This document shows positions 4,861 to 36,987 of a DNA stretch of 64,000 nucleotides, in pieces. How positions within the stretch are numbered: the stretch's first letter is position 1; the number at the start of each line of letters is the position of its first letter. The notes beneath the pieces were generated by a model. The model did not search any database and was not told the origin of the DNA. It worked only from the letters and a program-made list of their open reading frames with translations. A program made the position numbers and the translations under genes. This DNA is from Mytilus edulis (lineage: Eukaryota): assembly GCF_963676685.1 (NCBI RefSeq), contig NC_092348.1, positions 12,958,001 through 13,022,000 of the forward strand, given 5' to 3'.

Positions 4861-7791
4861 TTAGACATTAGAAATTTTACTTGCTCTTTCTATGACAAGT
4901 AAATCAATTCCCTGTTCATCACTACTATGATAGAAACCAATAGATTGTTTCGGTGGTTCCCCTAACAGTACACCCGATTCATTTTCTAATGTTGTCATGA
5001 CAGCATCGTTGACCTTGTCGATAAGACGAGCCGTAACGCTGTGTGACTCGCCGACATTATCACTTCTATTTCGGTTTTCGTCGATATCAATATCATGTAT
5101 GTCCCAAGATTGGATATACTGGTCAATTTTTGCTTTGAAATTACTTTTAAAACTAAGATTGTTTGTATCTAACTCTAACGGGTCTCTTCCACTGAATAAA
5201 ACATTTTCGAACACCCATGGTAAAAGTCCACCAGCCAAGGTTGCCAACATTTGATTTGCACCTGATATATTATATTCATCACCAAAAGCTAACACAATAA
5301 GAACGACGAACATCAGGAATGCGCATATACACATAAATCGCCATACGGCGTGTATGATATTCGGAACGAGAGGGCCAGGTGCCCCGACGGTATCCATATA
5401 ACAAGTTGAAAAGAAAAACTTTTCTGTTAAATACGGTTGATCTTGTCGGTCTAAAAATAGAATTAGTTTTCGAATAGACCATTTTGGTATTCCATCTTTT
5501 GATACAATCAATCTCACATTTACGTCTTTTTTATTTTTCTGTTCATCACATTGACCATCTTCGTTTGCAGTTATCTGAAATGCAGTATTTTTCTGTTCTT
5601 CAAAACTGTCACTAGCAACTGCTTCAACCTGCGAGCGATTGTTTTCCACTATCAAACTATTTATTGTTTGATTAAATTTGAGATATTTTTCACCTATACC
5701 TTTAAAACAATTTCGCGCATAAAGACCAAGCATAAAAACTAGTGTAATGTACTTGAGCATGTCAGAAGAATTCATTATAATGCCTATGACTGTGTATAAA
5801 ATCATTTCAACGAAGAATATAATTGTTTCCATTGTTAACAGAACAAGGGCAAATATAGTAATCAAACACATCGGTAACACAAAAAGTTGCAAGAGTCTAT
5901 TTTTACAGGACACCGTTTCTCGTGTTTTGTCAGGTACGTTTTGCAGATGAAATAGGTCAAACATGAAACCACATCTCTTTTTACAGGAAATTAGAGCTTC
6001 TCTGTTACACATTCCTGACCATTGAGTTAGATAGGCTAAGAAATGCGCCAGTAGACGTACAGTAACGTTGATAGTTGGTACACAGTAAAAGGCTAAAGAT
6101 ATCATAATTATTGGAAAAGCAAATATGAAATAAAAAGGGTATATTATTAACCCAGCTATCCCACATATCTCGCATGGAATGAGCAGTTGAACAATTGAAC
6201 CTTTAATTTTGGCAATCTTCGAAATTTGACGCATATCCCTCATTGACCGTCTCATCAAAGATTGTAATTTCTTTTTAATTCTAGGGTTGACCAATGCAAA
6301 AACTATCACATCAGTTATAATAACGGCGTAGCAAAGTAAGAACATAGGATGAAGAGGTGTAAGAGTATATGTCAAACTCCATTTAAATGCTGGTAGAGTC
6401 AAATTCCGAACTTCCGCTGCTAGTTTCTGATCTGAAGCTTCCAAATCTTCATATTCATAGTAGAAATATACTCTGAGAGCCCAAGGAACGGATATGGCTA
6501 AAATCAGGAATAGCCTCATGGTCTGTCGAAGACATCTGTGCCATGGGTATTTTATTATGTCAACAGGTTGAATCGTACTTGTCTGCATCTCGTCCTCGGG
6601 CATCTTTTCGGTTTCTTCATCGATGTTAAGTTTCTGGGACTTTTTATCAAATAACCATTGAAACCCAAAAATGCTGCTTCTACAACACTTTTGAAAAGAT
6701 GGCGATTTTCGTATGTGACACTTTACAAATAAAGAATACACTACTTGTAAAATACCAACTGGTACATAATTTGACGGAACCAGTCTATCGTATCTAACAA
6801 CCATATCCAATTTTCGGAGAGATACAGTCACAACTTTGTTAACAGGGACCGTTTTCATTGTTTCATAAAATTTCTTTAATTTACAGACTCTATTCCACTC
6901 GAAAGAATCTTGCATGTTTTTAATCTGGTTCATTTCCACGATCGGTACATTTAAATAAGCTAATTTGGATTTGTCATCTTTTGTTATTTTTTTTATTCGA
7001 AGTTCAATCGGGTTTGACAGAATATGTTCATAGACAGTTTCTGTGTATTTCTTTCTGTACAGGGACGACGGTATGAGAAGCGGACAGAACATAAGCACAA
7101 GTATTTTGATTATGAAGATACATGTAAATAATATTTCCATCCAATAATCGCTCGATATATTCTTACATTCTAAATGTTCATTTGCTTTACTGTGACCATG
7201 CCAGCAGCATATGTATTTGAAAGCAACAACAGATTGTTCGTTTTTTACCTCTACATTACAGATCTTTTCATTTTCTACTTCATGATCGTCTTCAAGATTC
7301 ATTTTAAAGTCCATGACCAGTAGCCTTCGCAAATTGTCTTCAATGGTGGAGAAGTTATGCCTGGTAAGACACTGAGTTGGTGTCTGTTTCAACTTAACAT
7401 CAATATGTTCTGTGTTGAAGGAAAGTGTTGTGAGAGATAAGTGTTCAAACTGAGGACGGAGATAAAGCAGGCTCCGTCCATGTCTTCCATAAGTTCGAAT
7501 CCAGTCAAGTGGTTTATAAATATTCCCTTGATGGCTTTTAGATTCCAGACTCATGTGATCCTCAAATTTAAGATGAATGAATATTAGTTTCTTACCTTCA
7601 CTTAACATTAGGTTTAATTTGCTCCTCAATTCAGGATCCACTGGTTGTACTTTACAGTTCGGAATAAGTAATCCAACAGCAAATATAGTGTTATAGGGGT
7701 CACTCTCATTGTGGCCTGAATGTTTATGATTATCCTCTGTAAAACAGCATGTGAAGATACATAAAGACAGGAAAACAATAAATAATGTCAT
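4861..7791 (-). CDS. Uncharacterized multi-pass membrane protein, 976 aa, single coding exon
   Basis: Uninterrupted 2.9-kb ORF in AT-rich DNA. Hydrophobic N-terminal signal peptide (MTLFIVFLSLCIFTCCF), Cys-containing ectodomain of about 200 aa, then roughly 8-10 hydrophobic helices (e.g. WMEILFTCIFIIKILVLMFCPLLI, FMCICAFLMFVVLIVLAF). No family recognised. Confidence 0.85.
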   Translation of the reverse strand: MTLFIVFLSLCIFTCCFTEDNHKHSGHNESDPYNTIFAVGLLIPNCKVQPVDPELRSKLNLMLSEGKKLIFIHLKFEDHMSLESKSHQGNIYKPLDWIRTYGRHGRSLLYLRPQFEHLSLTTLSFNTEHIDVKLKQTPTQCLTRHNFSTIEDNLRRLLVMDFKMNLEDDHEVENEKICNVEVKNEQSVVAFKYICCWHGHSKANEHLECKNISSDYWMEILFTCIFIIKILVLMFCPLLIPSSLYRKKYTETVYEHILSNPIELRIKKITKDDKSKLAYLNVPIVEMNQIKNMQDSFEWNRVCKLKKFYETMKTVPVNKVVTVSLRKLDMVVRYDRLVPSNYVPVGILQVVYSLFVKCHIRKSPSFQKCCRSSIFGFQWLFDKKSQKLNIDEETEKMPEDEMQTSTIQPVDIIKYPWHRCLRQTMRLFLILAISVPWALRVYFYYEYEDLEASDQKLAAEVRNLTLPAFKWSLTYTLTPLHPMFLLCYAVIITDVIVFALVNPRIKKKLQSLMRRSMRDMRQISKIAKIKGSIVQLLIPCEICGIAGLIIYPFYFIFAFPIIMISLAFYCVPTINVTVRLLAHFLAYLTQWSGMCNREALISCKKRCGFMFDLFHLQNVPDKTRETVSCKNRLLQLFVLPMCLITIFALVLLTMETIIFFVEMILYTVIGIIMNSSDMLKYITLVFMLGLYARNCFKGIGEKYLKFNQTINSLIVENNRSQVEAVASDSFEEQKNTAFQITANEDGQCDEQKNKKDVNVRLIVSKDGIPKWSIRKLILFLDRQDQPYLTEKFFFSTCYMDTVGAPGPLVPNIIHAVWRFMCICAFLMFVVLIVLAFGDEYNISGANQMLATLAGGLLPWVFENVLFSGRDPLELDTNNLSFKSNFKAKIDQYIQSWDIHDIDIDENRNRSDNVGESHSVTARLIDKVNDAVMTTLENESGVLLGEPPKQSIGFYHSSDEQGIDLLVIERASKISNV

Positions 7792-9423
7792 TTTGCAATA
7801 CTATTTTCTAAGAAATTTCGATAAACCTTGTCAAATCGCACAATTTATCACTAGGCAGAATTCACAGTGCTTCAGCTCTAAATATGATCCTAGTATTGAT
7901 CGATGAAGTCATGTCTAAAAGGAGGATGAACTTAGATTATGGAAAATTGTGAACGTAGGCAGAAAAAGTATTGGAAAACACAAAACGTGTTCTCATCATC
8001 TGTAATCTGCTTTAATTGCATATATGATAATATGTGATAATGATAAATAGTTGTATCATACTCAAAGTTAAACGTCGGTGATCCATATGAAAATCTAAAA
8101 ATGATAATGATCTTTATTCATTTATAATCTTATAATCAGTGATTTTTTTATGAAAATTTAAAAAAAATACATAGACATATGCATGATAGTTGAGTAATTT
8201 TGAAAGTTTGTTCTCCTATATTCTGAATTGTTATTCAGCGTGCAAAGTTTGTTTATGTTACCGATACATATTTATATTGTTGCAAAACGAGAACAAAGAT
8301 AGACATGGAAAATTGAAAAGATACGAAGTATTTAACCCAACCATAATAAAATTTGAATATTATACGTGTGTGTGTAATTCGAAGACACCAACTCCCCCAT
8401 AACACAAATCGGTAAAAAGCAATATGCAAGTGCAGTGTTTAAAATACGCTGTTTTCGACTATTTTACCTGACTGTTTTTGGGCGAGTTCTATGTGTTATA
8501 GTAACGCGATTGCTTTTGAAACTCAGTCGATCGGTCCAACTTAATTAATCTCTCAACTTACAAAAATTGCAAGTAAAGAAATTGTTTTTAAAGAAATAAA
8601 GATAAAACGTCTATTCTTCTTAGTTTTGTGTTTTTGTATGGTGATTTATATATTTTGAGCAAATATTTAAATTCTTATTTAAGTATTTTTATTGATTTTC
8701 ATCAGGGAACCACGGGCCCGTATGCACAGTAAAGCTACTTACGTTAAGATTTGTTCCGAACGGACGGATTTTTCTACATGACCTACGATAAATTAGAATT
8801 ACGATTGGATATTTTAACTTAAGTGGTTTTGGCAGACGTTCTTTATGTATATCCCTTTCTATATCTATAGATTCTCTAATCAGTTTAGCTAGTTTCGGTG
8901 TAACTTTGAACTGTTAATACAAAATATGGATTTGCGAATATGATTTGCATCTTAATATAAACATACTGATTAGTGGGATGATTGCCGATGAGACAATTAT
9001 CAATAAAGACCAAAGGACAAACATGTGAACAATAACAGGTCACTGTACGGATTTAAACTATGTATAAACTCATACCGTATAAGTAAGCTAGGCCACGGGA
9101 GGTCAAGATTTTAAACAACCTCATACCGTATAAGTAAGCTAGGCCACGGGAGGACAAAATCTTAAACAAATCAAAAGAGTAAAACAACGGCTTTATGTTA
9201 CTACAACAATGAACGAAATACAAATATGACGGACTTAAACTAAAGAACAACTAGGCCTTTCGCTGTTTATTTTCGATTTGCTAAACAATCATTTGAGTTG
9301 ACTTTGCGGATATGATATGTATCTTGAACACAATAAAATCAAGAATACAAGTTATTAAGTATCACGGTATAAAAATATACTGTCAATTATAGAAAGGAAA
9401 CTCATTGTTCCTATTCTGCTGAT

Positions 9424-9556
9424 ATAGAAACCATAACCGTCTACACTTAACTACTGATAGAAACCATAACCGTCTACACTTAACTACTGATAGAAACCAT
9501 AACCGTCTACACTTAACTACTGATAGAAACCATAACCGTCTACACTTAACTACTGA
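9424..9556. repeat. Minisatellite, 33-bp unit x4
   Basis: atagaaaccataaccgtctacacttaactactg repeated four times, identical. Confidence 0.95.
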
Positions 9557-14748: not shown

Positions 14749-17700
14749 TCATTTTGGATCAGTAAGAACGAGAGGAATGAGTTCAACAATTGGTCTTATG
14801 AATGAACTGGGTTTGTCGTCTCTAATAGTTCGAATTTCCACTTTTCGGATTTTCATGTCGGCACTGGGGAAAACTTTTGTTACTATTGCCATCGGCCACT
14901 GTGGTCTTGGTAACTCTTTGTCCCTCATGAGAACTATGTCTCCTATATTTAAGTCCTTTATCGGCAATTCCCACTTTTTCCTTACTTGAAGTGTATGTAA
15001 ATATTCTTTATTCCATTTTGACCAGAATTCATCTGCGAGTCCTTGAACCATCTTCCACTGACTACGTAGCATGTCCTTAGTTCCAAATTGTAGCATAGTT
15101 TGTTCATCCTGTCCTTTCTTGTGTGTTAAGAGCATAGACGGAGATAATACTTCCGGGTTATCCGGGTCAGTAGAGACAGATACTAACGGCCTTGAATTCA
15201 CAATAGCACTGACCTCTGCCATTAGAGTAACTAAAATTTCATGTGTGAGTCTATTTTTCTCACGAATGAGCATGCAATCTAAAATCCTTCTGCTTAAACC
15301 TATCATCCTTTCCCATGATCCACCAAAATGTGAAGCATGCGGAGGGTTGAATTTCCATATAGTTCCGTATTGTGATAGCATTATATCAACAGTGCCCTTT
15401 TCAATGAATTCAGCTGTGATTCCTAAATCTTGTATTGCACCAACAAAATTTGTTCCTCTATCTGATCAAATAAGTTTAACAGATCCTCTGATAGCAATGA
15501 AACGACGATATGCATTGATAAAACTGGCGCTACTCATTTCTTCTATGACTTCAATATGTATCGCTCTTGAAACCAAACATGTGAATAATATTGCCCATCT
15601 TTTCTGATTGATTGATGAGCCTCTAGTTTTTCTATGGATGATTTGGTATGGTCCAAAAGTATCGATTCCCACAAAGGTAAAGGGAGGTCCTGGAGTGAGT
15701 CTATCTTCCGGAAGGTCAGACATCTTTTGTACTTTAAACTGACCTCGCAATTTCTTACATGTGACACATTGTCTGATGATTGTAGAAACTAGCCTTTTAC
15801 TGCCTATAACCCAAAAGCCTCCTGAACACAAGGCTCCTTCAGTCATGTGTCTGCCTTGATGACATGTCAATTCATGATAGTGACGCGTCAGTAACACAGC
15901 TAAATGATGTTTCTTTGGAATAATTATTGGCTGAAGATGTAGCTCAACAGTTTTTGCATGTCGTATACGTCCACCAACTCTAAGAATATTATGTTTGTCT
16001 AACACAGGTGAAAGCGACAATAAATTTGACGTAGGAAGTAACTGACCAACGGAACTAATTGCATTGATATCGTTTGAAAATGCCTCTGCTTGCACTGTTT
16101 TGATGATAAATTGTTCCACTTCTTGTCGAGAAGGTGGACTCTCTTGATGTAACTTTCTAATAAAGGCTTTAAGAAACTGAATAGCTCTCACTAGACTTTT
16201 CCAAGATGCAAGTCGCGAAAACCTGCTTGACAATCCTACCTCCTCATTAATGTCAGTTTTATTAGTAACTACAGACGGACGGACTTCTTTATCATCATTT
16301 GGATCGACAAGTGGATACATTTGTTTTCCAATATCTGAATCTTGACTCAAGAATGTTGGTCCCTGCAGGTAGACTGAACTGGGTAAATCTACAGTATTAA
16401 GGCTTCTTGTTGCTACATCTGCTGGATTCAGATCAGTTGAAATGTAGCTCCATTGGCTAGGAGAACTTGATGTTCTTATTCGGTTAACTCGGTTGCTCAC
16501 ATAAACATAAAATCTACGTGTTTCATTAGTTAAGTAACCTAAAACGACCTTACTGTCAGTATAAAAATGAAAACAAGTCGAGTCTAATTTGAGGTGTTCT
16601 TTCAAAGTATCTGCAATCTCGACGGAAAGGACAGCTGCACATAACTCTAAACGCGGAATTGTGTGGCCGTGTACTGGCGACACTTTAGCTTTGCCCATCA
16701 GAAAGGAGACTTCACTTTTATTCTCACCAAACAATTTCAAATAAGCCACAGATGCTATCGCGTCCTTTGACGCATCACTGAATACATGAACCTCCAAATG
16801 TGTAGAGTTTAAAAATGATATATCTGAATATCTACGTGGTATTTGTAAGTTTTGAAGATGAACCAATGAGGATACCCAATTTTCCCATCTTAATTTCAAA
16901 TGATCAGGGAGATCTTCATCCCAATTTGCAGGTCCAGATTCTGACATCATCTCTCGGAGAATTAGTTTTCCATTCATTGTAATTGGAGACGCAAACCCAA
17001 TAGGGTCAAATATGCTATTAATGACCGACAATGCACCTCTGCGAGTGTACGGCTTTTTCTCTGAAGACACTTTGAATGTAAATTGATCGACAGAAATGTC
17101 CCATGAAAGTCCTAAGCTGCGTTGTACAGGAGGAGTTTCAGATCCAAGGTCCAGGTCCTTGAGGTCCGAAGATAAGTCTTCTGATGGAAAGCTTTGAAGA
17201 ACGGCTTTACTATTCGACACAAATTTATGGAGTCGCAATCCACCACCATCTACAAGAGCCTTTTGAGTTCGCTTCATAAGGTCAACTGCGGACTCAACAT
17301 CTGGGCATGACATCAACCCATCATCAACATAAAAGTTGTTATAAACAAAGTCCTGAATGTCATTATCTGCATTTTGCACTGCTCTCCTTAAACAATATGT
17401 GGCAACAGAGGGAGAAGGGCTATTCCCAAAAACATGTACAGTCATTCTGTAATCAATAAGAGGGCGATGAACTTCATTGTTTTCATGCCATACAAAACGC
17501 AAATAGTCTCTATGTGAATCTGTTACCTTAAAGTTGTAAAACATTTGTTCTACGTCTGCTGTCACAGCTACAGCCTCTTTACGGAATCTAAGTAAAACAC
17601 CTAATAAATTGTTTGTTAGATCTGGACCTTTTATTAAGACATCATTCAATGAAGTTCCGCTAAACTTAGCTGACGAATCAAAAACAATTCTCACTTTTCC

Positions 17701-20235
17701 AGGTTTTTTTGGATGATATACCCCAAAAAAGGGAAGATACCAACATTCATTTCCTATGGGTAGATTTGGTGCCTTCTCAGCATGTTTGTTCACAAACATC
17801 TTATTCATGAATTCAAGTATATGCTCTTTTTTGTTAGGGTTCATGCGAAGACTACGTTCCAACGAATTAACTCTCTGCACTGCTTGTACTCTATTATTAG
17901 GCAACACAGGTCTGTCTTTGCGAAACGGAAGAGGTGCAGTCCACCGATTATCTGACCCTTGTTTCACTTTAGAATCCATCAATTCTATAAATAGTTTGTC
18001 CTCGATTGAAGGTCCAATAGTTTCATCGTAAGGTGTTCTCTCAAAGATAAATTCAGGTTTTACAGTAAAAGCATTTGCACAAGGTTGAAAATGAGAGGTG
18101 CGTCCATCTGGCAAAATAAAAGTTTTGTTTACAGTTACAGTTTCAGTTCGATGAATCTGACCGAGACAAGATTCTCCTACGATCACCCACCCTAATGGCA
18201 ACTTTTGAGCATAGGGCAAGTTGTCACCTCCCAAGCGTTGATCAAGAACGTGATGGGCTTGAATCACATCTCTACCAATAAGTAATTCAATTTTGATATT
18301 CTGGTCAATGGGTGGTATGTGCGACGCTATGTTGTTAAGATGATCATGACTAGCTGCCACTTCTGGTGATGGTATCTCATCACGGTTGTTTGGTATGTCG
18401 TTGCATTCAATTAGTGATGGAATGTTTATAGAAGTACTATGATCTAACGCTTCAATTGTATAATGTCTTGCTACTCTACCCATTGTAGATACTTTGCCTG
18501 AGCATGATGCTAATGTAAAATTTATATGTTCAGCATTCTCATTAAATATATCGAAAAACTTTGATGTACCTAATGAATGAGTACTTTGATCATCTATGAT
18601 TGCATATACTTTCTGAGCCATGTGTGTTTTATTTTTTGGATAAACATAAATTGGCAAAATCTTAGCACAAGACTTGCTACTACTTAACGGATTTCCACAA
18701 ATCTTTGTACAAATAGCTGATACATGTGATAGGTTATTAAGCTCCCCTTCGTGAATCTTCTCACTTTCACAGTCATTTACAGATTGAGAGCCGTTATATG
18801 GATCTATGTTTTGGTCTTGTTGGTAAATGTGTAAAGCTGTTGGATGATTTGAACTTTTACAAATATTACAATGTATGTTTTCTCTACAGCTTCTTTGTAA
18901 ATGTTTCTGAAGACTGCAGCAACGAAAGCAAAGCCTGTTTTTCTTTAACAAGTCCATACGTTCAGTCATTGGCTTTTGACGGAAAGCTCTACATTCATTG
19001 AGATCGTGATTTGTGCCATGAATAGGACAAACTTGCTTTTCATCTATTGTGTATACATCAGTTTTTCTAGTAGATACACGCAAATTAGATTGCATACTAG
19101 CAGGATTAGAAGTTTTATTTGTCTGCGGAGCAAACTGAAAACTCGGATCTGTACGCCATTTTGCCATGTCATAAGTAAAGTCAACAAAGAATGAGAATGG
19201 CGGGTACAACATATTGTGCCTTTTCTTGTATTTAATAGCTTCTGTTGACCATTTTTCCTGTAAGTTATGAGGAAGACAATTTACGATCTGATTAACGCCA
19301 GTTGAGGAGTCATAATAAGCGAGAACTTGTGAATATTGTGGATTGTTTTTAACAAATTGGATTTCACATAATATGTCATATAGTTCATACAGGCGTTCAT
19401 AATCTTTGGCAGTATTGCTTAACTTCGGAAAGTTAGCAAGTTTGGTTTTTAAGCATTGCTCAATCAATTCTGGACTTCCATACCGAACATCCAATCGGTC
19501 CCAAATTTTGTGTAAACCACCAACATGATCACTAGCACTGGCAGCTTTGATACTTTCTGCTTGTCTTGCTGAATCTGGACCAAGCCATTTTATGAGAAGA
19601 TCCAACTCTTCTGAAGGAGTCACACTAAGTTCTTTCATAACATCTTTAAATGTCTCTTTCCAAGATAGGAACTGAAATGGGCTATCATTGTATTTGATAA
19701 GTCGTGATAAAACAATATCCTTCCGAGCCATCATCTTTGTGATCAAATTACACAGTTCCATTTGTGAATTATTGTTGTTAACATTAGGAGGCACATATGG
19801 TGTCGATGTATTTGCATATGCGCTAAGTTGTGGAGATTGCTTTTCTGGTGTATTCACTATTGCAATTGGTTTTGTATCTAGTATATGTAGATTTTGAACA
19901 TATTCTTTTGTTCGTTCTTTTTGAAATTCAGATACAGAGTCTAGATCGTCATCCTCTCCTACCATGGACTCATTTTCCAATATCCTGATCTCTGACTCCA
20001 ACACCTCAGTCTCTTCTTTAATCTGAAGGATACTTAATTCTGCCTCTAGGGCAGCCTTTTGTCTTATAAGACTAGCCTGTTTTGCACTGTATTTAACCTT
20101 CGTCTCTAATTGTGCTTTTTTTCTTAATATATCAGATTTACTTGATAAGTGACTGTGATTTGAAACTGAACGACTCGGTTTTATCTGAGTGAAGTCTATC
20201 TGTTCATGCTGTTTTAGTTCTCGGTAGGTTGCCAT
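14749..20235 (-). pseudogene. BEL/Pao Gag-Pol polyprotein (~1828 codons) with one in-frame TGA at 15466-15468
   Basis: Three Gag Cys/His knuckles (CPIH...C, CFRCC...H...C, CNIC...H...H), protease AIIDDQS, RT FYVDD, RNase H FSDAS and TIPRLELCAA, integrase HHCC, GIDTFGP, *SDRGTNF and GGSWERM. ORFs 15466-20262 and 14749-15381 are in the same frame. Confidence 0.93.
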
Positions 20236-20262
20236 TGTCACAACTGGTCGAAGCTTTTTCAC

Positions 20263-21043
20263 TGTTATGGATCACAAGAAAGACTAATAAGACTTCAAAT
20301 TCTTTACTTGATAAACAAACCTCCGGAGAGGGTGAAAAACTGAAAAATACAAAATAAGCAATTCTTACTAACAATTAGCATTACAAAAATTTAGCATAAC
20401 AGTACACAATAAAGTATCAATGCTAAAAACACAATATTTGGTTTTAAATCATCTTTTTTTCTTTTTGTCAAATGAAATGTTCAATATTCAACTTGTGTTA
20501 TACAATGATTGTCATTTATAGTCTAAGCAAATTCACAGTTCATAATAGATGTAATAAAATAATTCAGTTACAGTAAAAAACAGTAGCACATGTGCTTGTG
20601 GTTTACAGTAGAAAATAGTCGCCTTTTTTCACGAATCGAAGTGAGTAGTTTACAATAACAAAAATCGCAAATTAAATACTTCTCAAGAGAAAACATCTTA
20701 ATCAAAGCAATGGAAATACAAATCAGCACACTGGATTTAAGAATTAATGTAAAAAAAAGGTATGATAAACAGTTCATGTAAAATGACCAAAAAGAATGTT
20801 TGTCAACTGTTTAAGACGACTTGAAATAATATACTTGTCAGAAAAGGTTTATACATATGTAAAGAAAAATATGCTACATTTTAACTTACGCTTTGGTGTC
20901 GTGAAGTTACAAATTTCATGAGAAATTGTACGAAATTTTGCGTGAACACATTTTCCAAACGTGCCGGATATAAAAATAAGTGTATATAACAAGAAGATAA
21001 AAAACAAAGACGTGAACTCCGTTTCATTTCCGGAAACACGACA
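20263..21043 (-). repeat. 5' LTR of BEL/Pao element
   Basis: 781 bp. I found only one difference from the 3' LTR (aaaaaaaagg versus aaacaaaagg). Confidence 0.97.
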
Positions 21044-24900: not shown

Positions 24901-25648
24901 AAGAAATAAAAGCAGTCTTAATACGTTCTCCAAATTCAACCTTTCGTCTGGTAGACAGCCTTATTTGTCAAACTTGCTCGATTTTAAGTTTGCAAGGTTA
25001 AAATTGTTAGCACGAACAAATTGCCTACCCATATATCAAGTTTTGTATAGAATGAATATGTCCGAGACTACCATTTGTCAAATGTGTTCATGCAAATCTG
25101 AGGAGTCCGTGGAACATGTCGTTCTCGGATGTTCTGAATATTCTCCTAAACCATGTATACGAAGTTAGTATTTTCCCGATATAAATGAGTACCTAAGTAC
25201 TAACTTCCCCGCCTTTTGCTTCACAGAGTTACCGTCCTACGAAAAAATAAACATACTGCTAGGTGAATGTTTTTATAAGGTTGATCCAAATGTTTGTAAA
25301 CATGTTGACACTTTTAGTAAAAAGATGCTGAGTGAAATGTACACTTACAGATCTTCAATTTTAGAAGATTAAGCTAACTGTGATTTACGTGTGCAGATAT
25401 CAGAAGGCAGCTTAATCGGTGTGATCTCTAAATGTTGAGATTTTATATTAATATATAATGTTGTTATGTTTTACATGAATGTTGACTTGTTTTAAAAGAG
25501 AATTAATTTTTAACTTTGATATTGTCCTATGTGTATTTTATTTAATTGTAAATTATTCATTGTATATGCTCTTAGACGCATTTGTGGGTACCCTGCCTAC
25601 AAGTGCCCCGTTGTAAAGGGGTAGTTTCTTAATAAATATATATATATA
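21950..25648 (+). mobile_element. Decayed, internally deleted non-LTR retrotransposon (CR1/L2-group-like)
   Basis: ORF1 remnants from ATG 22333 with a PHD finger (CICN...WCRDWFHEKC...WVCSVC) and an SGNH/esterase-like segment (MGSLIIRDI...CVRG...IQVGSN). These join directly to the RT C-terminal half (GLKQGYVLSPALFS, degenerate ADD motif, LKFNQNKSKVM, YKYLGV) and a C-terminal CQMC...ESVEHVVLGC finger. 3' stem-loop, AATAAA and (TA)n tail. Many stops and frameshifts; boundaries approximate. Confidence 0.8.
23025..23180. repeat. Insertion of short palindromic repeats (ttaacgcgttaa) splitting the LINE PHD finger
   Basis: About six acgcgttaa-like palindromes interrupt the DMIR / WCRDWFH coding continuity. 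Confidence 0.7.
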
Positions 25649-27548
25649 TAACATTGTTGGGTTGATGTTTAGACGAGTTGTATATACATTATGTACACAG
25701 CCATGTATCACCATCATTGATGGCGATCCGATGGACACATCTGTTGTAGGGTTGTCACTGACTCAGACGTACTTATGAATATAATTATTTTCTGTGACTG
25801 TATCTTACATTAATTTGTAGGATCCTTTACTATAGATAATTTAGCTGATCTGTAACAATAACATCTTCATGCCTTATATATATCATGTACTGCAGTACGC
25901 CGCTAGATTAAAACTGACGTGGAAAGGTAACACACGGCCAGCGAAAGCTCTATTTTTTAGAGCCCAGGTGGTCGTGTGGTCTAGCGGGACGGCTGCAGTG
26001 CAGGCGATTTGGTGTCACGATATCACAGTAGCATGGGTTCGAATCCCGGCGAGGGAAGAACCAAAAATTTGCGAAAGCAAATTTACAGATCTAACATTGT
26101 TGGGTTGATGTTTAGACGAGTTGTATATACATTATGTACACAGCCATGTATCACCATCATTGATGGTGATCCGATGGACACATCTGTTGTAGGGTTGTCA
26201 CTGACTCAGACGTACTTTTGAATATTATTATTTTCTGTGACTGTATCTTACATTAATTTGTAGGATCCTTTACTATAGATAATTTAGCTGATCTGTAACA
26301 ATAACATCTTCATGCCTTATATATATCATGTACTGCAGTACGCCGCTAGATTAAAACTGACGTGGAAAGGTAACACACGGCCAGCGAAAGCTCTATTTTT
26401 AAGAGCCCAGGTGGTCGTGTGGTCTAGCGGGACGGCTGCAGTGCAGGCGATTTGGTGTCACGATATCACAGTAGCATGGGTTCGAATCCCGGCGAGGGAA
26501 GAACCAAAAATTTGCGAAAGCAAATTTACAGATCTAACATTGTTGGGTTGATGTTTAGACGAGTTGTATATACATTATGTACACAGCCATGTATCACCAT
26601 CATTGATGGTGATCCGATGGACACATCTGTTGTAGGGTTGTCACTGACTCAGACGTACTTTTGAATATTATTATTTTCTGTGACTGTATCTTACATTAAT
26701 TTGTAGGATCCTTTACTATAGATAATTTAGCTGATCTGTAACAATAACATCTTCATGCCTTATATATATCATGTACTGCAGTACGCCGCTAGATTAAAAC
26801 TGACGTGGAAAGGTAACACACGGCCAGCGAAAGCTCTATTTTTAAGAGCCCAGGTGGTCGTGTGGTCTAGCGGGACGGCTGCAGTGCAGGCGATTTGGTG
26901 TCACGATATCACAGTAGCATGGGTTCGAATCCCGGCGAGGGAAGAACCAAAAATTTGCGAAAGCAAATTTACAGATCTAACATTGTTGGGTTGATGTTTA
27001 GACGAGTTGTATATACATTATGTACACAGCCATGTATCACCATCATTGATGGCGATCCGATGGACACATCTGTTGTAGGGTTGTCACTGACTCAGACGTA
27101 CTTATGAATATAATTATTTTCTGTGACTGTATCTTACATTAATTTGTAGGATCCTTTACTATAGATAATTTAGCTGATCTGTAACAATAACATCTTCATG
27201 CCTTATATATATCATGTACTGCAGTACGCCGCTAGATTAAAACTGACGTGGAAAGGTAACACACGGCCAGCGAAAGCTCTATTTTTAAGAGCCCAGGTGG
27301 TCGTGTGGTCTAGCGGGACGGCTGCAGTGCAGGCGATTTGGTGTCACGATATCACAGTAGCATGGGTTCGAATCCCGGCGAGGGAAGAACCAAAAATTTG
27401 CGAAAGCAAATTTACAGATCTAACATTGTTGGGTTGATGTTTAGACGAGTTGTATATACATTATGTACACAGCCATGTATCACCATCATTGATGGCGATC
27501 CGATGGACACATCTGTTGTAGGGTTGTCACTGACTCAGACGTACTTAT
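25649..27548 (+). repeat. Tandem array of a 443-bp unit (4 units + 128 bp) flanked by (TA)n
   Basis: Unit starts taacattgttggg at 25649, 26092, 26535, 26978 and 27421; about 99% identical; (TA)n on both sides. Confidence 0.98.
25959..26400 (+). ncRNA. Putative ~440-nt structured Pol III RNA with tRNA-like head (further copies 26402-26843, 26845-27286; partial 27288-27548)
   Basis: A-box-like TGGTCGTGTGG (25969-25979), perfect B-box GGTTCGAATCC (26036-26046), T5 run at 26396-26400, extensive 5'/3' complementarity with G-U pairs. Confidence 0.55.
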
Positions 27549-27829
27549 ATATATATATATGTATATATTAGTTCTGTTACATAGCATTTCTAGAGTCGGG
27601 GTAATTTAGAGCCGACTGACTACTATATATATGTAGCTCTTTGTTCATTGTTGAAAACTGTATGTATTAACATAATAGATCTATAATTAACCAAGCAGTG
27701 TCATAATAATACTTATGATAAACATTTGCATTTTTGTTATTATGATCTTTTTTCATAATGCAAATAATATCACAATAAGATATTAATTTGGTTCTTAACG
27801 CTTTATTTCGTTAACGGAAAACCGTAACG

Positions 27830-30800
27830 TCAATAACAGGAAGTCCATCCGCATTTTCTGCCATAGATTCTGCTACATGTGGTTCCTCGGCATGGTGCTT
27901 GGGATACTCCACAGCAGTTAATGTTTCCTTTAGAGCATCTTACTGCAACCTATAAGATTAAAAGGAATATTTCTTTAATTGAGAGTTTTTCATCTAATGA
28001 ATATGCAATATCCATTTTAAGTAAGCATATAAAAATTTAAAACAAAACTTACAGCGAAGTAATTGAGATTTTTACAAATTTAAACTCAAGAATTTTCTAA
28101 ATAAAAATTAACTGAATAACAATGCGCATTTATGGAAATAGAATAATCAGAAATCAAAAAATGTGAACGAATAAACAACAACTAGAAAGTTATGGCTAAC
28201 TAATCAACCAAGGAAAAGTGTAAATTTTCTACCGAATTCAAAGAAACTTGACAATTTCCGTTTTTTTCAAAGGACCGGAAATACATAACGCTTTTAAAAA
28301 GGATATTACATTATGATTGACAATTATGAATATTTATTCAATGGAACCCTCCTCTCTGTTTTTCCGATGTCATACTACTAGAATGACTAATGACGGATTT
28401 GTCCTTAGGTTTGAATTAACTAAATGATAACTAAAATTTGCCTATATTTATATCAAGCTTTATTTGTTAAAATCTTAAATTTAGAAAAAATAGTATATGA
28501 AAATGCTATGACATAAAGCGTATTGTTTTTTGAACTACCGTTTAATAAAAGACTGCTTCCTTATAGAAGAAAATTGCAAATGAACAATTCGAAAGATATA
28601 TGTATTATTAACTCTGTAAGTACACCTACATAGCTTAAGTTAAGGACTTACATCACAGTTGTTAGTACATGTTTTAGCATAACCTCCAGTTCTAAGAGTC
28701 CTTCTTTCCAATTTGGTCAAGTAATTCCAACTTGCGATCCAGCTATTACATGAAGATAATGTATTTCGTCCATTTTCAATGTTTCCTATTAAAGAGTAAA
28801 ATGACAACCCGATTAATAATTGATTGAATAACAATAAGTCAATGCTATTTTTAAGACAATAAATGATTAAAGAAGAAGCCACAGAAACGGGTGATCGTCT
28901 TCATTACAGAAAATATTATAAATTTTCATATAAATATGTAAGTTGTTTTGGGTTGTTTTATTGACGAATACTTCACAAATTTCTCCTTTAGTTGCAATTG
29001 ATCAATTGAAATACGTTTTTGTCTTTCTGCTGAAGTTGATAATTTGAAAATTGGCCTGTGTGAAAGGAGGATAGTGTGTCAATAAAATGGCTAACAAACA
29101 TTTTTTAAGGGGAAAAAATAAAAGTAATAAAAAAAAGCCACATATGCACAAAGGTAAGGAAATCATATTCCGAATCTAATGCAACGCAATAAATCATATT
29201 GCAGTTTTGACATTTAGGCTGTAACTGCGTACCTGTTACAAGGAAGTCTTTTCCATCCAAGACTACACCACATTGAGCAGCAGTGCCGGTTATCAAAGTA
29301 GTTTCCTTTCCTTTATAAAGATTGCTCTAAAATATATAAAAACGCTTAAAGTCTATAACACGCATTTACCTTTTTATTAGATTTCTTTATATATTATCAA
29401 TATTTGTTATGTTTACTACAATTTATTAAGTCATGGTTGCAGCCATGTCTTGATCTGTTTCCTGTTTATACTCATTAGTAATAGGGGTCATAATTAAGTA
29501 AACTATTTTTCAGAATTGCTCTCTCTGATTTTCTTCATGGTTTCTACAGTGCTTGATGTAATAATCTTAAATGGGAAAACCATTGTATCATTTTCTAAAA
29601 GATTGAATGCAATTAGATTTTTGCAGATTTTAAGCATAAAATTTTGTAATGCTCATTAATTCTGTTTATATTTGAGGATGATGGAGGTCTTCAACCAGAG
29701 CTCTTTCTTCGTACATTTTCTTTAATTGTTGATGGCAGTTAAGGTTTTCATGATTCTTAGATACAGCATAACTGTATTATCCAGTTCAGTAGCGATTAGC
29801 AATTAACTAGATATTTGGATTTTTTCTTTGATTTGTTTTGTTGATTCTACCAGTAGCTACCATGTTGTCTTTTCAACAGGGGGTTTTACAGAATAATCAT
29901 ACAACAATATACAAGAGAATTGTTGTTGCGCATGTTACATGTACAACTTGGAGACATTACTTCAAAATAACTACTTACCTTGAAGGCTTCAGTAACCCTC
30001 ACAAAATATTTGGTACCACGATTGTAATTCAATCTCTTTTGACGCAGAACAGTCACTCGAATTACTATAAGATAAGATAAGAAGATAAGAAAACTTTATT
30101 TTGATTCGGCATTTAAGTACAAATATGCAACACAAGATCTAAGGAGCTTTTGAGTAAAATACTGTAAAAGAAAAACAACACAACATCCATAAAATATATA
30201 AAAGAAACATGACATGACATGAAATGAAGGCACTAGGAAAGGCTGGGGTTATGTACATTAAGTCATTTTGTATGGGATATTTTACCAGTTACGGTCATGT
30301 ATTTTTGAGTGTAAGTCATTTGGCAATTGATATTTAACCAGTCGGTTTATGAACGTTTGAGGATATCTAATTTGGTATGGAGTATTTTTAACAATGCATT
30401 AATAAAGCACTATATTAGGAGTTTTTGGAAACAGAAGTGATTTATTAAATATCGGATTTTGAATTAAAATATATTGAATGATAGTTACTGTAATTCAGTG
30501 AAGTTTTAACTATTACAGTTGTTTCAAAAAACATTACTAGATACTATGTATCATTTGTTTAATCTGGATTTTATATTTAAGGAATGACTGTTATATTTTT
30601 TCTTTCTATCGAGAAAAACATAAAAAAAACACTAAATAACCACTGCCGAATAGACTGAAAAAGATATCACAGTAATTTCTTATAATTTAATTCTAAATTC
30701 CATTTAAACCGGAGTAAACCATGAAAAAATGTTAATGACGTAACGATCAGAAGACAAAATTATGTCTCTGAACTAATAAACAAAACAACGTCAGCCAATC

Positions 30801-36694: not shown

Positions 36695-36987
36695 ACATGT
36701 AATTCGTCAGTACGAACATCGATATAACCTTGTAAATGTTTATTTCGAACAACGATATAACCTTGTAATTGTTTAATTCGAACATCGATATAACCTTGTA
36801 ATAGTTAAATTCGAACATCGATGTAACCTTGTAATTGTTTAGTTCAAACATCGATGTAACCGTGTAATTGTTCAGTTCAATCATCGATGTAACCGTTTAA
36901 TTGTTTAATTCGAACACCGATATAACCTTGTAATGGTTTAATTCGAACATAGATGTAACCTTGTAATCGTTCAGTTCGAACATCGAT
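36695..36987. repeat. Minisatellite, 33-bp unit x ~9
   Basis: ttcgaacatcgat(a/g)taaccttgtaattgtttaa repeated with substitutions. Confidence 0.9.

Follow-up and report, generated by a model that had tools for sequence, protein, structure and literature searches.

The 64,000-nucleotide stretch of Mytilus edulis DNA analysed here (the window; NC_092348.1, positions 12,958,001 to 13,022,000 of the forward strand) contains a short tandem repeat whose unit was originally predicted to encode an RNA of ~440 nt, base-paired from end to end. The locus raises the question of whether such a repeat is a plain satellite or the genomic record of a structured RNA, such as a viroid-like or retrozyme circle. 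TRF detected a period of 443 bp in 4.3 copies with 99% matches at positions 25649-27555, and the sequence itself and BLAST with the unit identified the same plus-strand array. It is composed of a 5' partial copy (unit positions ~135-443), the full units 25959-26401, 26402-26844, and 26845-27287, and a 3' partial copy, and is bordered by (TA)n upstream (25636-25650) and downstream (from ~27547). As the focal unit we used 25959-26401 on the plus strand, in the phase of the original prediction from a tRNA-like head to a T-run, as delimited by sequence, fold, and a 100% self match; its GC content is 0.41. The T-run at the unit junction (26395-26401, plus strand) reads ATTTTTA in the window and comprises four to eight T residues in most copies and seven (T7) in the expressed copies.

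Type-2 promoters of Pol III are characterized by an A box and a B box of known consensus. By matches to both, a degenerate tRNA-like head was assigned to positions 25969-26061 of the plus strand. The A box, TGGTCTAGCGG (25977-87), agrees with TRGCNNAGTGG at 9 of 11 positions, and the B box, GGTTCGAATCC (26036-46), agrees with GGTTCGANTCC at all 11; the gap of 48 nt between them corresponds to a tRNA-like spacing, as judged by sequence match only. The first 44 nt of the unit can be read approximately as the 5' strand of an acceptor stem, a D arm including the A box, and the start of an anticodon arm. A local 3' strand of the acceptor stem is absent from the head and is supplied by the tail of the unit: the 5' strand GGTCGTG has no local partner and pairs with CACGGCC in the tail. 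A genuine tRNA gene was rejected, as ARAGORN called none and Rfam returned no tRNA match. Membership in a known RNA family was rejected as well, since the Rfam matches were at chance level only and far under the gathering scores (snoZ103, E 0.025, outside the repeat; AgvB; mir-1277). At E≤10, positions 25000-28200 yielded neither a hammerhead nor another Rfam ribozyme on either strand. The only CUGA...GAAA arrangement is a hammerhead look-alike in the tail (CTGACGT, 26357-63, and GAAA, 26386-89). Manual inspection excluded it as a hammerhead, as it has U for A9, C for U16.1, and no helix I adjoining the core.

The unit had been predicted to fold through six nested long-range helices, and all six are present at the positions given: AGAGC (25959-63) with GCTCT (26390-94), TGGTCGTGTG (25969-78) with CACACGGCCA (26374-83), TCTAGCGG (25980-87) with CCGCTAGA (26343-50), GCTGCAGTGCA (25992-26002) with TGTACTGCAGT (26329-39), GCATGGG (26031-37) with TTCATGC (26309-15), and TTACAGATC (26083-91) with GATCTGTAA (26290-98). 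The non-Watson-Crick pairs of these helices are G-U pairs on the plus strand, as had been noted. Five of the six helices occur in the MFE structure of the plus strand according to the dot-bracket notation, the sixth giving way to a local hairpin. The folding energy of the plus-strand unit (25959-26400) was -145.1 kcal/mol compared to -114.1 +/- 5.6 kcal/mol for dinucleotide-shuffled sequences (z -5.6), and none of 100 shuffles folded as well; the comparison that had been proposed as a check thus came out in favour of the predicted structure. The minus strand folded at -118.1 kcal/mol (z -4.1 against its shuffles). The internal 326 nt were structured above chance to a nearly equal extent on the two strands (z -3.6 and -3.4), indicating that the advantage of the plus strand resides in the terminal helices. 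Both predicted local hairpins were found in the window. The GNRA hairpin AAATTTGC-GAAA-GCAAATTT (26065-26084, plus strand), supported by fold and sequence, folds in the window copy and the L028 copy, and is identical in L068, the one diverged copy examined. The perfect form of the second hairpin, ATCACCATCA-T-TGATGGTGAT (26150-70), is present in the window unit but proved to be a minority variant: 44 of 50 distinct genomic units and ~95% of the RNA reads carry C at 26167, which results in an A-C mismatch.

The origin of the terminal pairing is apparent from the tail (26329-26394, plus strand), which by fold and complementarity is a diverged antisense copy of positions 1-44 of the head. Aligned to 25959-26002, it matches in four complementary blocks (5, 10, 8, and 11 bp), interrupted by two stretches without complementarity and an insert of 23 nt. 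The pairing is thus that of the tRNA-like head with an inverted copy of its own 5' half. Because the units are arranged in tandem, tail, T-run, and the head of the next unit form an imperfect palindrome of 121 nt. The corresponding junction hairpin (26327-26447, plus strand; ~121 nt with 34 bp in four blocks) is centred on GCTCT-ATTTTTA-AGAGC (26390-26406) and has a predicted energy of -59.1 kcal/mol on the plus strand versus -43.0 kcal/mol on the minus strand. In the fold of a dimer, each of the two junctions formed this hairpin locally, both in the MFE and in the centroid structure. In an RNA that continues across the junction, the antisense copy would therefore pair locally with the following head rather than close the 5' and 3' ends of a single unit. 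Accordingly, the pairing proposed in the original prediction is real, whereas its interpretation as a juxtaposition of the ends was not supported. End-to-end pairing and junction hairpin are the same contacts, and the appropriate name follows from the form of the RNA (monomer, circle, or multimer).

The G-U pairs had been taken as a sign of selection on an RNA. Selection was assessed on 50 distinct units, with the copies being only 2-10% diverged. In the terminal region of these 50 units, 28 of 78 paired and 13 of 39 unpaired columns were variable, which is an equal density. Among transitions in the terminal helices, 14 kept pairing on the plus strand and 3 broke it, with 58% expected to be kept (binomial estimate, p~0.03). 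The transition types were overall symmetric (C>T 15, G>A 13, A>G 11, T>C 11), indicating that no simple mutational strand bias lies behind the kept pairs. All 12 transversions in the 50 units disrupted pairs. L068, which is ~10% diverged, contributes a series of G-C, G-U, and A-U at 25995:26336 and a change from A-U to G-C at 25959:26394; it also carries three broken pairs. In the expressed ACACATGCCCACC subfamily the stem is kept by re-registering, as a G-U pair is lost through G26380C and a G-C pair gained through G26384C. When the substitutions defining subfamilies were compared to random placement, the hairpin was kept no better in two subfamilies (fractions 0.24 and 0.31) and only marginally better in a third (0.055). 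As random placement preserves the hairpin about as well, selection is suggested at most, and given this result and the density of variable sites, selection on the RNA helices could not be demonstrated.

The array family is transcribed. We analysed the raw reads of two stranded RNA-seq runs, reading ~6% of each. The depth across the unit was 1,100-1,950 with the first mate on the minus strand compared to 15-140 on the other strand, which is a strand bias of 10-100-fold. By the usual dUTP library convention, the RNA is most likely the plus strand. More than 500 reads per run join the end of a unit to the start of a unit, and junction-spanning RNA was estimated to account for 35-70% of the full depth. 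In neither run did read begins or ends pile up at any position, and reads cross the T7 tract at the junction of the expressed copies, which are marked by 25952 A>T and 25958 T>G. This pattern indicates that the bulk of the RNA is multimeric or circular and not a Pol III monomer extending from head to T-run; the predicted discrete transcript of ~440 nt was consequently not supported. The libraries may represent poly(A)+ or total RNA, so that Pol III monomers could be under-sampled. Circles and tandem transcripts are equally compatible with the junction reads, and nothing in these data shows the viroid-like or retrozyme-like circle of the original prediction. Reads running into (TA)n after position 26129 were observed as well, at ~4-7% of the reads at this position, whereas 36% of the genomic copies end there; reads from array ends are thus depleted ~6-10-fold relative to the genome. 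The tail subfamily ACACATGCCCACC comprises ~80% of the reads and 14% of the sampled distinct units. As a single subfamily dominates, a few loci located inside Pol II transcripts could explain both abundance and strand bias. The statement that the repeat is not a plain satellite held, based on the tRNA-like head with A and B boxes, the abundant, strand-biased, junction-crossing RNA, and the stronger structure on that strand.

In the genome of 1.37 Gb (14 large contigs/chromosomes), the unit had more than 170 matches of 95-98% identity, distributed over all large contigs; its arrays comprise 1 to >20 units and are highly identical internally. The family comprises at least 3,700 units and ~2,600 insertion ends. 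Genome-wide patterns were counted with up to one mismatch. A 3'-terminal module of ~45 nt, ACAGATC...GACGAGTTGTATATA (26085-26129, plus strand; unit position 171, BLAST 174), constitutes the main 3' terminus of the putative retroposition. It continues into the unit in 3,697 cases and ends in long (TA)n in 2,076 cases, whereas a transition from long (TA)n into the unit at that TA site was counted only 19 times. At a second 3' terminus of lesser use, ...CAGACGTACTT runs into (TA)n (26207-26217, plus strand; unit position 259, BLAST 267); this pattern was counted 520 times, and the array in the window itself ends there, at ~27546. The two termini are not recognizable as an internal duplication, as their local alignment scored no better than shuffles. 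The resulting polarity of 109:1 (2,076 vs 19) at one TA site cannot be produced by a symmetric DNA-level process at TA tracts.

Seventeen arrays were examined, and the comparisons of flanks and inverted copies covered 16 loci each. In the 17 arrays, the 3' end was nearly always ...GACGAGTTGTATATA followed by (TA)n at 26129 and less often ...CAGACGTACTT at 26217, while the longest TA tract of the unit (~26316-26326) never served as a 3' end. The 5' ends fell on at least 12 different unit positions. Insertions that are constant at the 3' end and variable at the 5' end are the hallmark of target-primed reverse transcription. Many insertions span ~1.4-1.6 units in unit coordinates, indicating a template longer than one unit, and inverted 5'-truncated copies adjoin the arrays at ~6 of 16 loci. 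With the unit masked, the flanks of 16 arrays had no common element, which argues against a larger carrier at the sampled loci. The 45-nt module was further found on its own or fused to other sequences; its 112 exact copies have differing upstream contexts. In a metagenome scan we obtained five mussel-like contigs, one ~10%-diverged copy among them; the viral and prokaryotic contig collections yielded no relatives of the unit, and a literature search retrieved no paper describing this 443-bp unit. Thus, the repeat is a dispersed, very abundant, and heavily transcribed mobile element that inserts into TA-repeats, with thousands of young copies in a mussel.

Taken together, these results are probably best explained by a non-coding, tRNA-derived retroposon that is inserted as head-to-tail multimers into (TA)n, probably by the reverse transcriptase and endonuclease of a Naiad- or Neptune-like Penelope-like element (PLE). 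The insertions display the structural features of PLEs, namely a constant 3' end, truncated 5' ends, tandems that are partial or multiple, and an inverted 5'-truncated upstream copy, and their target is a microsatellite, (TA)n, as in Naiads. PLE endonuclease genes are abundant in the genome and often occur as inverted pairs (150 scored GIY-YIG matches of 858 candidates). Naiad PLEs have been described to prefer (TA)n, to be 5'-truncated, to form partial tandems with inverted upstream copies, and to lack a hammerhead, and the non-autonomous Chlamys PLEs, from the sister group of the Naiads, form multicopy head-to-tail insertions (PMC8557442). In the proposed mechanism, the arrays would be transcribed, most likely from the plus strand, into junction-continuous RNA; transcription and continuity are observed, and the strand is assigned by convention. 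Nicked (TA)n would then prime reverse transcription at the UAUAUA that ends the ~45-nt module (26085-26129) or at the minor site (26217), a step that we infer from the extreme polarity of the junctions. On a multimeric or circular template, synthesis with variable 5' stops would yield cDNA of more than one unit, as suggested by the insertions of ~1.4-1.6 units. Priming from both ends of the target, or a snap-back, may account for the inverted 5'-truncated copies that were observed. Within this explanation, the terminal pairing would be a fossil of a snap-back at the ancestral 5' end; the junction hairpin may or may not now serve the element, in stability, processing, or template choice. Long arrays could have grown after insertion through unequal crossing-over.

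A particular autonomous partner did not emerge. Two PLE copies near copies of the family on metagenome contigs (L066 and L069) are oriented tail-to-tail with these, and visual inspection of the PLE 3' ends revealed no likeness to the module. The junction between PLE and module in L066 is absent from this genome, indicating that this neighbourhood is a one-off. A 6-kb non-coding family sharing 57 nt with the unit was rejected as autonomous partner, as it is a composite element with an internal tandem repeat of 67 bp, in which the module is represented by a copy with strong 5' truncation. Alternatively, a LINE with a (TA)n tail (L068) may provide the machinery.

A first alternative is a true retrozyme-like circle, a reading we regard as rather unlikely but worth serious weight. 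Here, multimers would be cut once per unit, the cutting agent being either a ribozyme that escaped recognition or tRNA-processing enzymes of the host that read the head, with its acceptor-like stem closed by the tail, and ligated to circles of ~440 nt that act as rolling-circle templates for reverse transcription, with the panhandle as the functional closing stem. Such circles would fit junction RNA at 35-70% of the full depth without discrete ends, the depletion of array-end reads, and insertions exceeding one unit, as well as the pairing of the acceptor strand GGTCGTG with CACGGCC of the tail and the 14 kept versus 3 broken pairs among terminal-helix transitions; hammerhead retrozymes of mussels share the genomic and expression style (PMC7229834). 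However, no ribozyme family was detected at E≤10, the look-alike fails at A9, U16.1, and helix I, read ends do not pile up at a cleavage site, tandem genomic copies account equally well for every junction read, and the substitutions of three subfamilies keep the hairpin no better than random placement (0.24, 0.31, 0.055). We consider it improbable that the family is a ribozyme-less counterpart of retrozymes, in which host tRNA-processing or ligation enzymes cut the multimers to unit length and circularise the products, and the circles serve as rolling-circle templates for a Penelope-like reverse transcriptase. As part of that same improbable reading, the enzymes would recognise a split tRNA-like fold with an acceptor stem closed by the antisense tail 330 nt away. 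If it applied, animals would possess a way of making small retrotransposing circRNAs that depends on proteins.

We give little credence to a SINE-derived satellite, that is, a tandem tRNA-derived SINE spreading at the DNA level only (by unequal crossing-over, reinsertion of eccDNA, or TA microhomology) with the RNA as passive read-through. Tandem arrays with high internal identity, TA-rich junctions on both sides, and rearranged and inverted fragments at array edges would agree with such a history, and SINE-derived tandem structures are known in bivalves (PMC11481361), but the counts disfavour it: the 109:1 polarity at the same TA site, the absence of any 3' end at the longest TA tract (~26316-26326) among 17 arrays, the combination of constant 3' ends with variable 5' ends, and the 10-100-fold strand bias of the RNA all stand against it. 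It is highly improbable that the arrays represent LTR-internal-LTR series of a Helenus-type TRIM, a miniature LTR element whose terminal repeat includes a tRNA-like sequence. Helenus families occur in Mytilida and carry tRNA-like A and B boxes, and for at least one family, from zebrafish, tandem arrays are known (PMC10886601). The variable 5' ends refute this reading, as a fixed 5' boundary is missing; moreover, TG...CA ends are lacking, by eye no PBS complementary to a tRNA 3' end follows the terminus, and the flanks are (TA)n in place of 4-bp target duplications. We see equally scant reason to regard the units as satellite-like repeats carried, as in oysters, by a larger DNA transposon of the Helentron or MITE type. 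Carriers of this type are common in bivalves (PMC7492417), yet for the sampled loci the idea is refuted by the masked flanks of 16 arrays, which have no element in common. The family is best filed as a retrozyme-like retroposon that lacks the ribozyme, probably depends on PLEs, and inserts with a Penelope-like signature.

The hammerhead is the defining feature of animal retrozymes. The present family exhibits a retrozyme-style genomic lifestyle, with dispersed tandems, junction-spanning RNA, and a Penelope-like insertion signature, without it. If the RNA proves to be circular, formation of circles in such elements needs no ribozyme; if it is only multimeric, Penelope-like tandem insertion requires neither ribozyme nor circle. 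Either outcome bears on the poorly understood transposition mechanism of Penelope-like elements. In addition, thousands of tRNA-like and hairpin-forming loci and their transcripts can mislead the annotation of ncRNAs, circRNAs, and satellites in bivalves. New in this analysis are the recognition that the panhandle is an antisense copy of the tRNA-like 5' half and equals a local junction hairpin, the 109:1 polarity, and the tests for selection.

Among known systems, the SINE-like retrozyme Sm-alpha of Schistosoma combines a tRNA-derived head containing A and B boxes with a structured body, tandem copies, abundant RNA, and an active hammerhead. The mussel family shares with it the A/B-box head joined to a structured body, the tandem copies, and the abundant RNA and differs by the active hammerhead of Sm-alpha. 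Compared to a Pol III SINE in general, the A and B boxes are present, whereas neither a transcript start upstream of the A box nor an end at the T-run was seen. With tRNA-derived SINEs and SINE-derived tandem arrays of bivalves the family has in common a tRNA-related head, a defined 3' tail, 5' truncation, and tandem and palindromic arrangements (PMC11481361). Unlike in these, the 3' terminus lies in the middle of the unit, insertions exceed one unit, and the RNA reads through the T-run; a known conserved SINE core domain was not recognised in the sequence of the unit. Helenus TRIMs likewise are short non-coding retroelements of Mytilida with a tRNA-like promoter piece and can form arrays (PMC10886601), while the 443-bp family lacks LTR boundaries, PBS, PPT, and a 4-bp TSD.

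The resemblance to metazoan non-LTR retrozymes comprises short dispersed tandems of a few hundred bp, a low GC content (41% here), abundant and strongly self-paired RNA spanning the junctions, and a likely dependence on Penelope-like elements, and mussels are known hosts (PMC7229834). A derivation of these retrozymes from PLEs has been proposed (bioRxiv 10.64898/2026.07.22.740005). In contrast to them, the 443-bp unit has no hammerhead and carries a tRNA-like head of Pol III type, and on visual inspection it had no segments in common with the published mussel retrozyme Mg353. Non-autonomous PLEs such as MRC1 of the Chlamys clade display 5' truncation, head-to-tail multicopy insertions, and inverted upstream copies and have no hammerhead (PMC8557442), as is the case here. 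A tRNA-derived head has not been described for them, and while the 3' end of the Chlamys elements resembles that of their autonomous partner, no partner carrying the 45-nt module was found for the mussel family. Its (TA)n target, finally, is a feature described for Naiads (PMC8557442).

The 3'-terminal module (~45 nt) of the 443-bp family also occurs in other repeat contexts of the searched mussel genome. On the minus strand of contig C5 it recurs at 51169234, 51170110 and 51170988, at a spacing of ~877 bp and preceded by a context (AGC) unlike that of the 443-bp unit. This recurrence, together with the different upstream context, suggests a second tandem family with the same 3' end. A dispersed non-coding repeat of ~6 kb was observed at contig C2, 16.47 Mb (locus L062:49-6095), and at no fewer than 36 further places. 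Its copies are 95–97% alike and include ~2.5 kb of internal 67-bp tandem repeats; within it, a 57-nt copy of the module sits in a TA-rich site.

Close upstream of the 443-bp array, a weak C/D-box match resembling snoZ103 (25296-25388, plus strand) scored 27 bits against a gathering score of 44 (E 0.025) and is probably due to chance. Two mutually unrelated 33-bp tandem repeats occur at 9424-9556 (4.0 perfect copies) and 36713-36987 (8.3 copies, 87%). On the minus strand, 14752-20271 is the pol region of a BEL/Pao-type LTR retrotransposon: two long open frames there, of 1,601 and 238 aa, contain DUF5641 and Peptidase_A17, the peptidase of Pao retrotransposons (E 3e-42 for the peptidase). A Pfam search with a 979-aa open frame (4864-7800, minus strand) returned zero families at E≤0.001.

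The metagenome contig L068 (JACKZZ010008598.1) carries LINE-like reverse-transcriptase frames at 19-1806, identified by eye only. Downstream, the sequence passes into (TA)n(GA)n, directly preceding a 5'-truncated, ~10%-diverged copy of the 443-bp family; the element with these frames is possibly a (TA)n-tailed LINE. GIY-YIG endonuclease matches of Penelope-like elements in the mussel genome often form inverted pairs 1–5 kb apart, for example C14:51602947(+)/51607512(-), C1:951135(-)/954661(+) and C2:62066209(-)/62068785(+), which is the head-to-head layout typical of Penelope-like elements.
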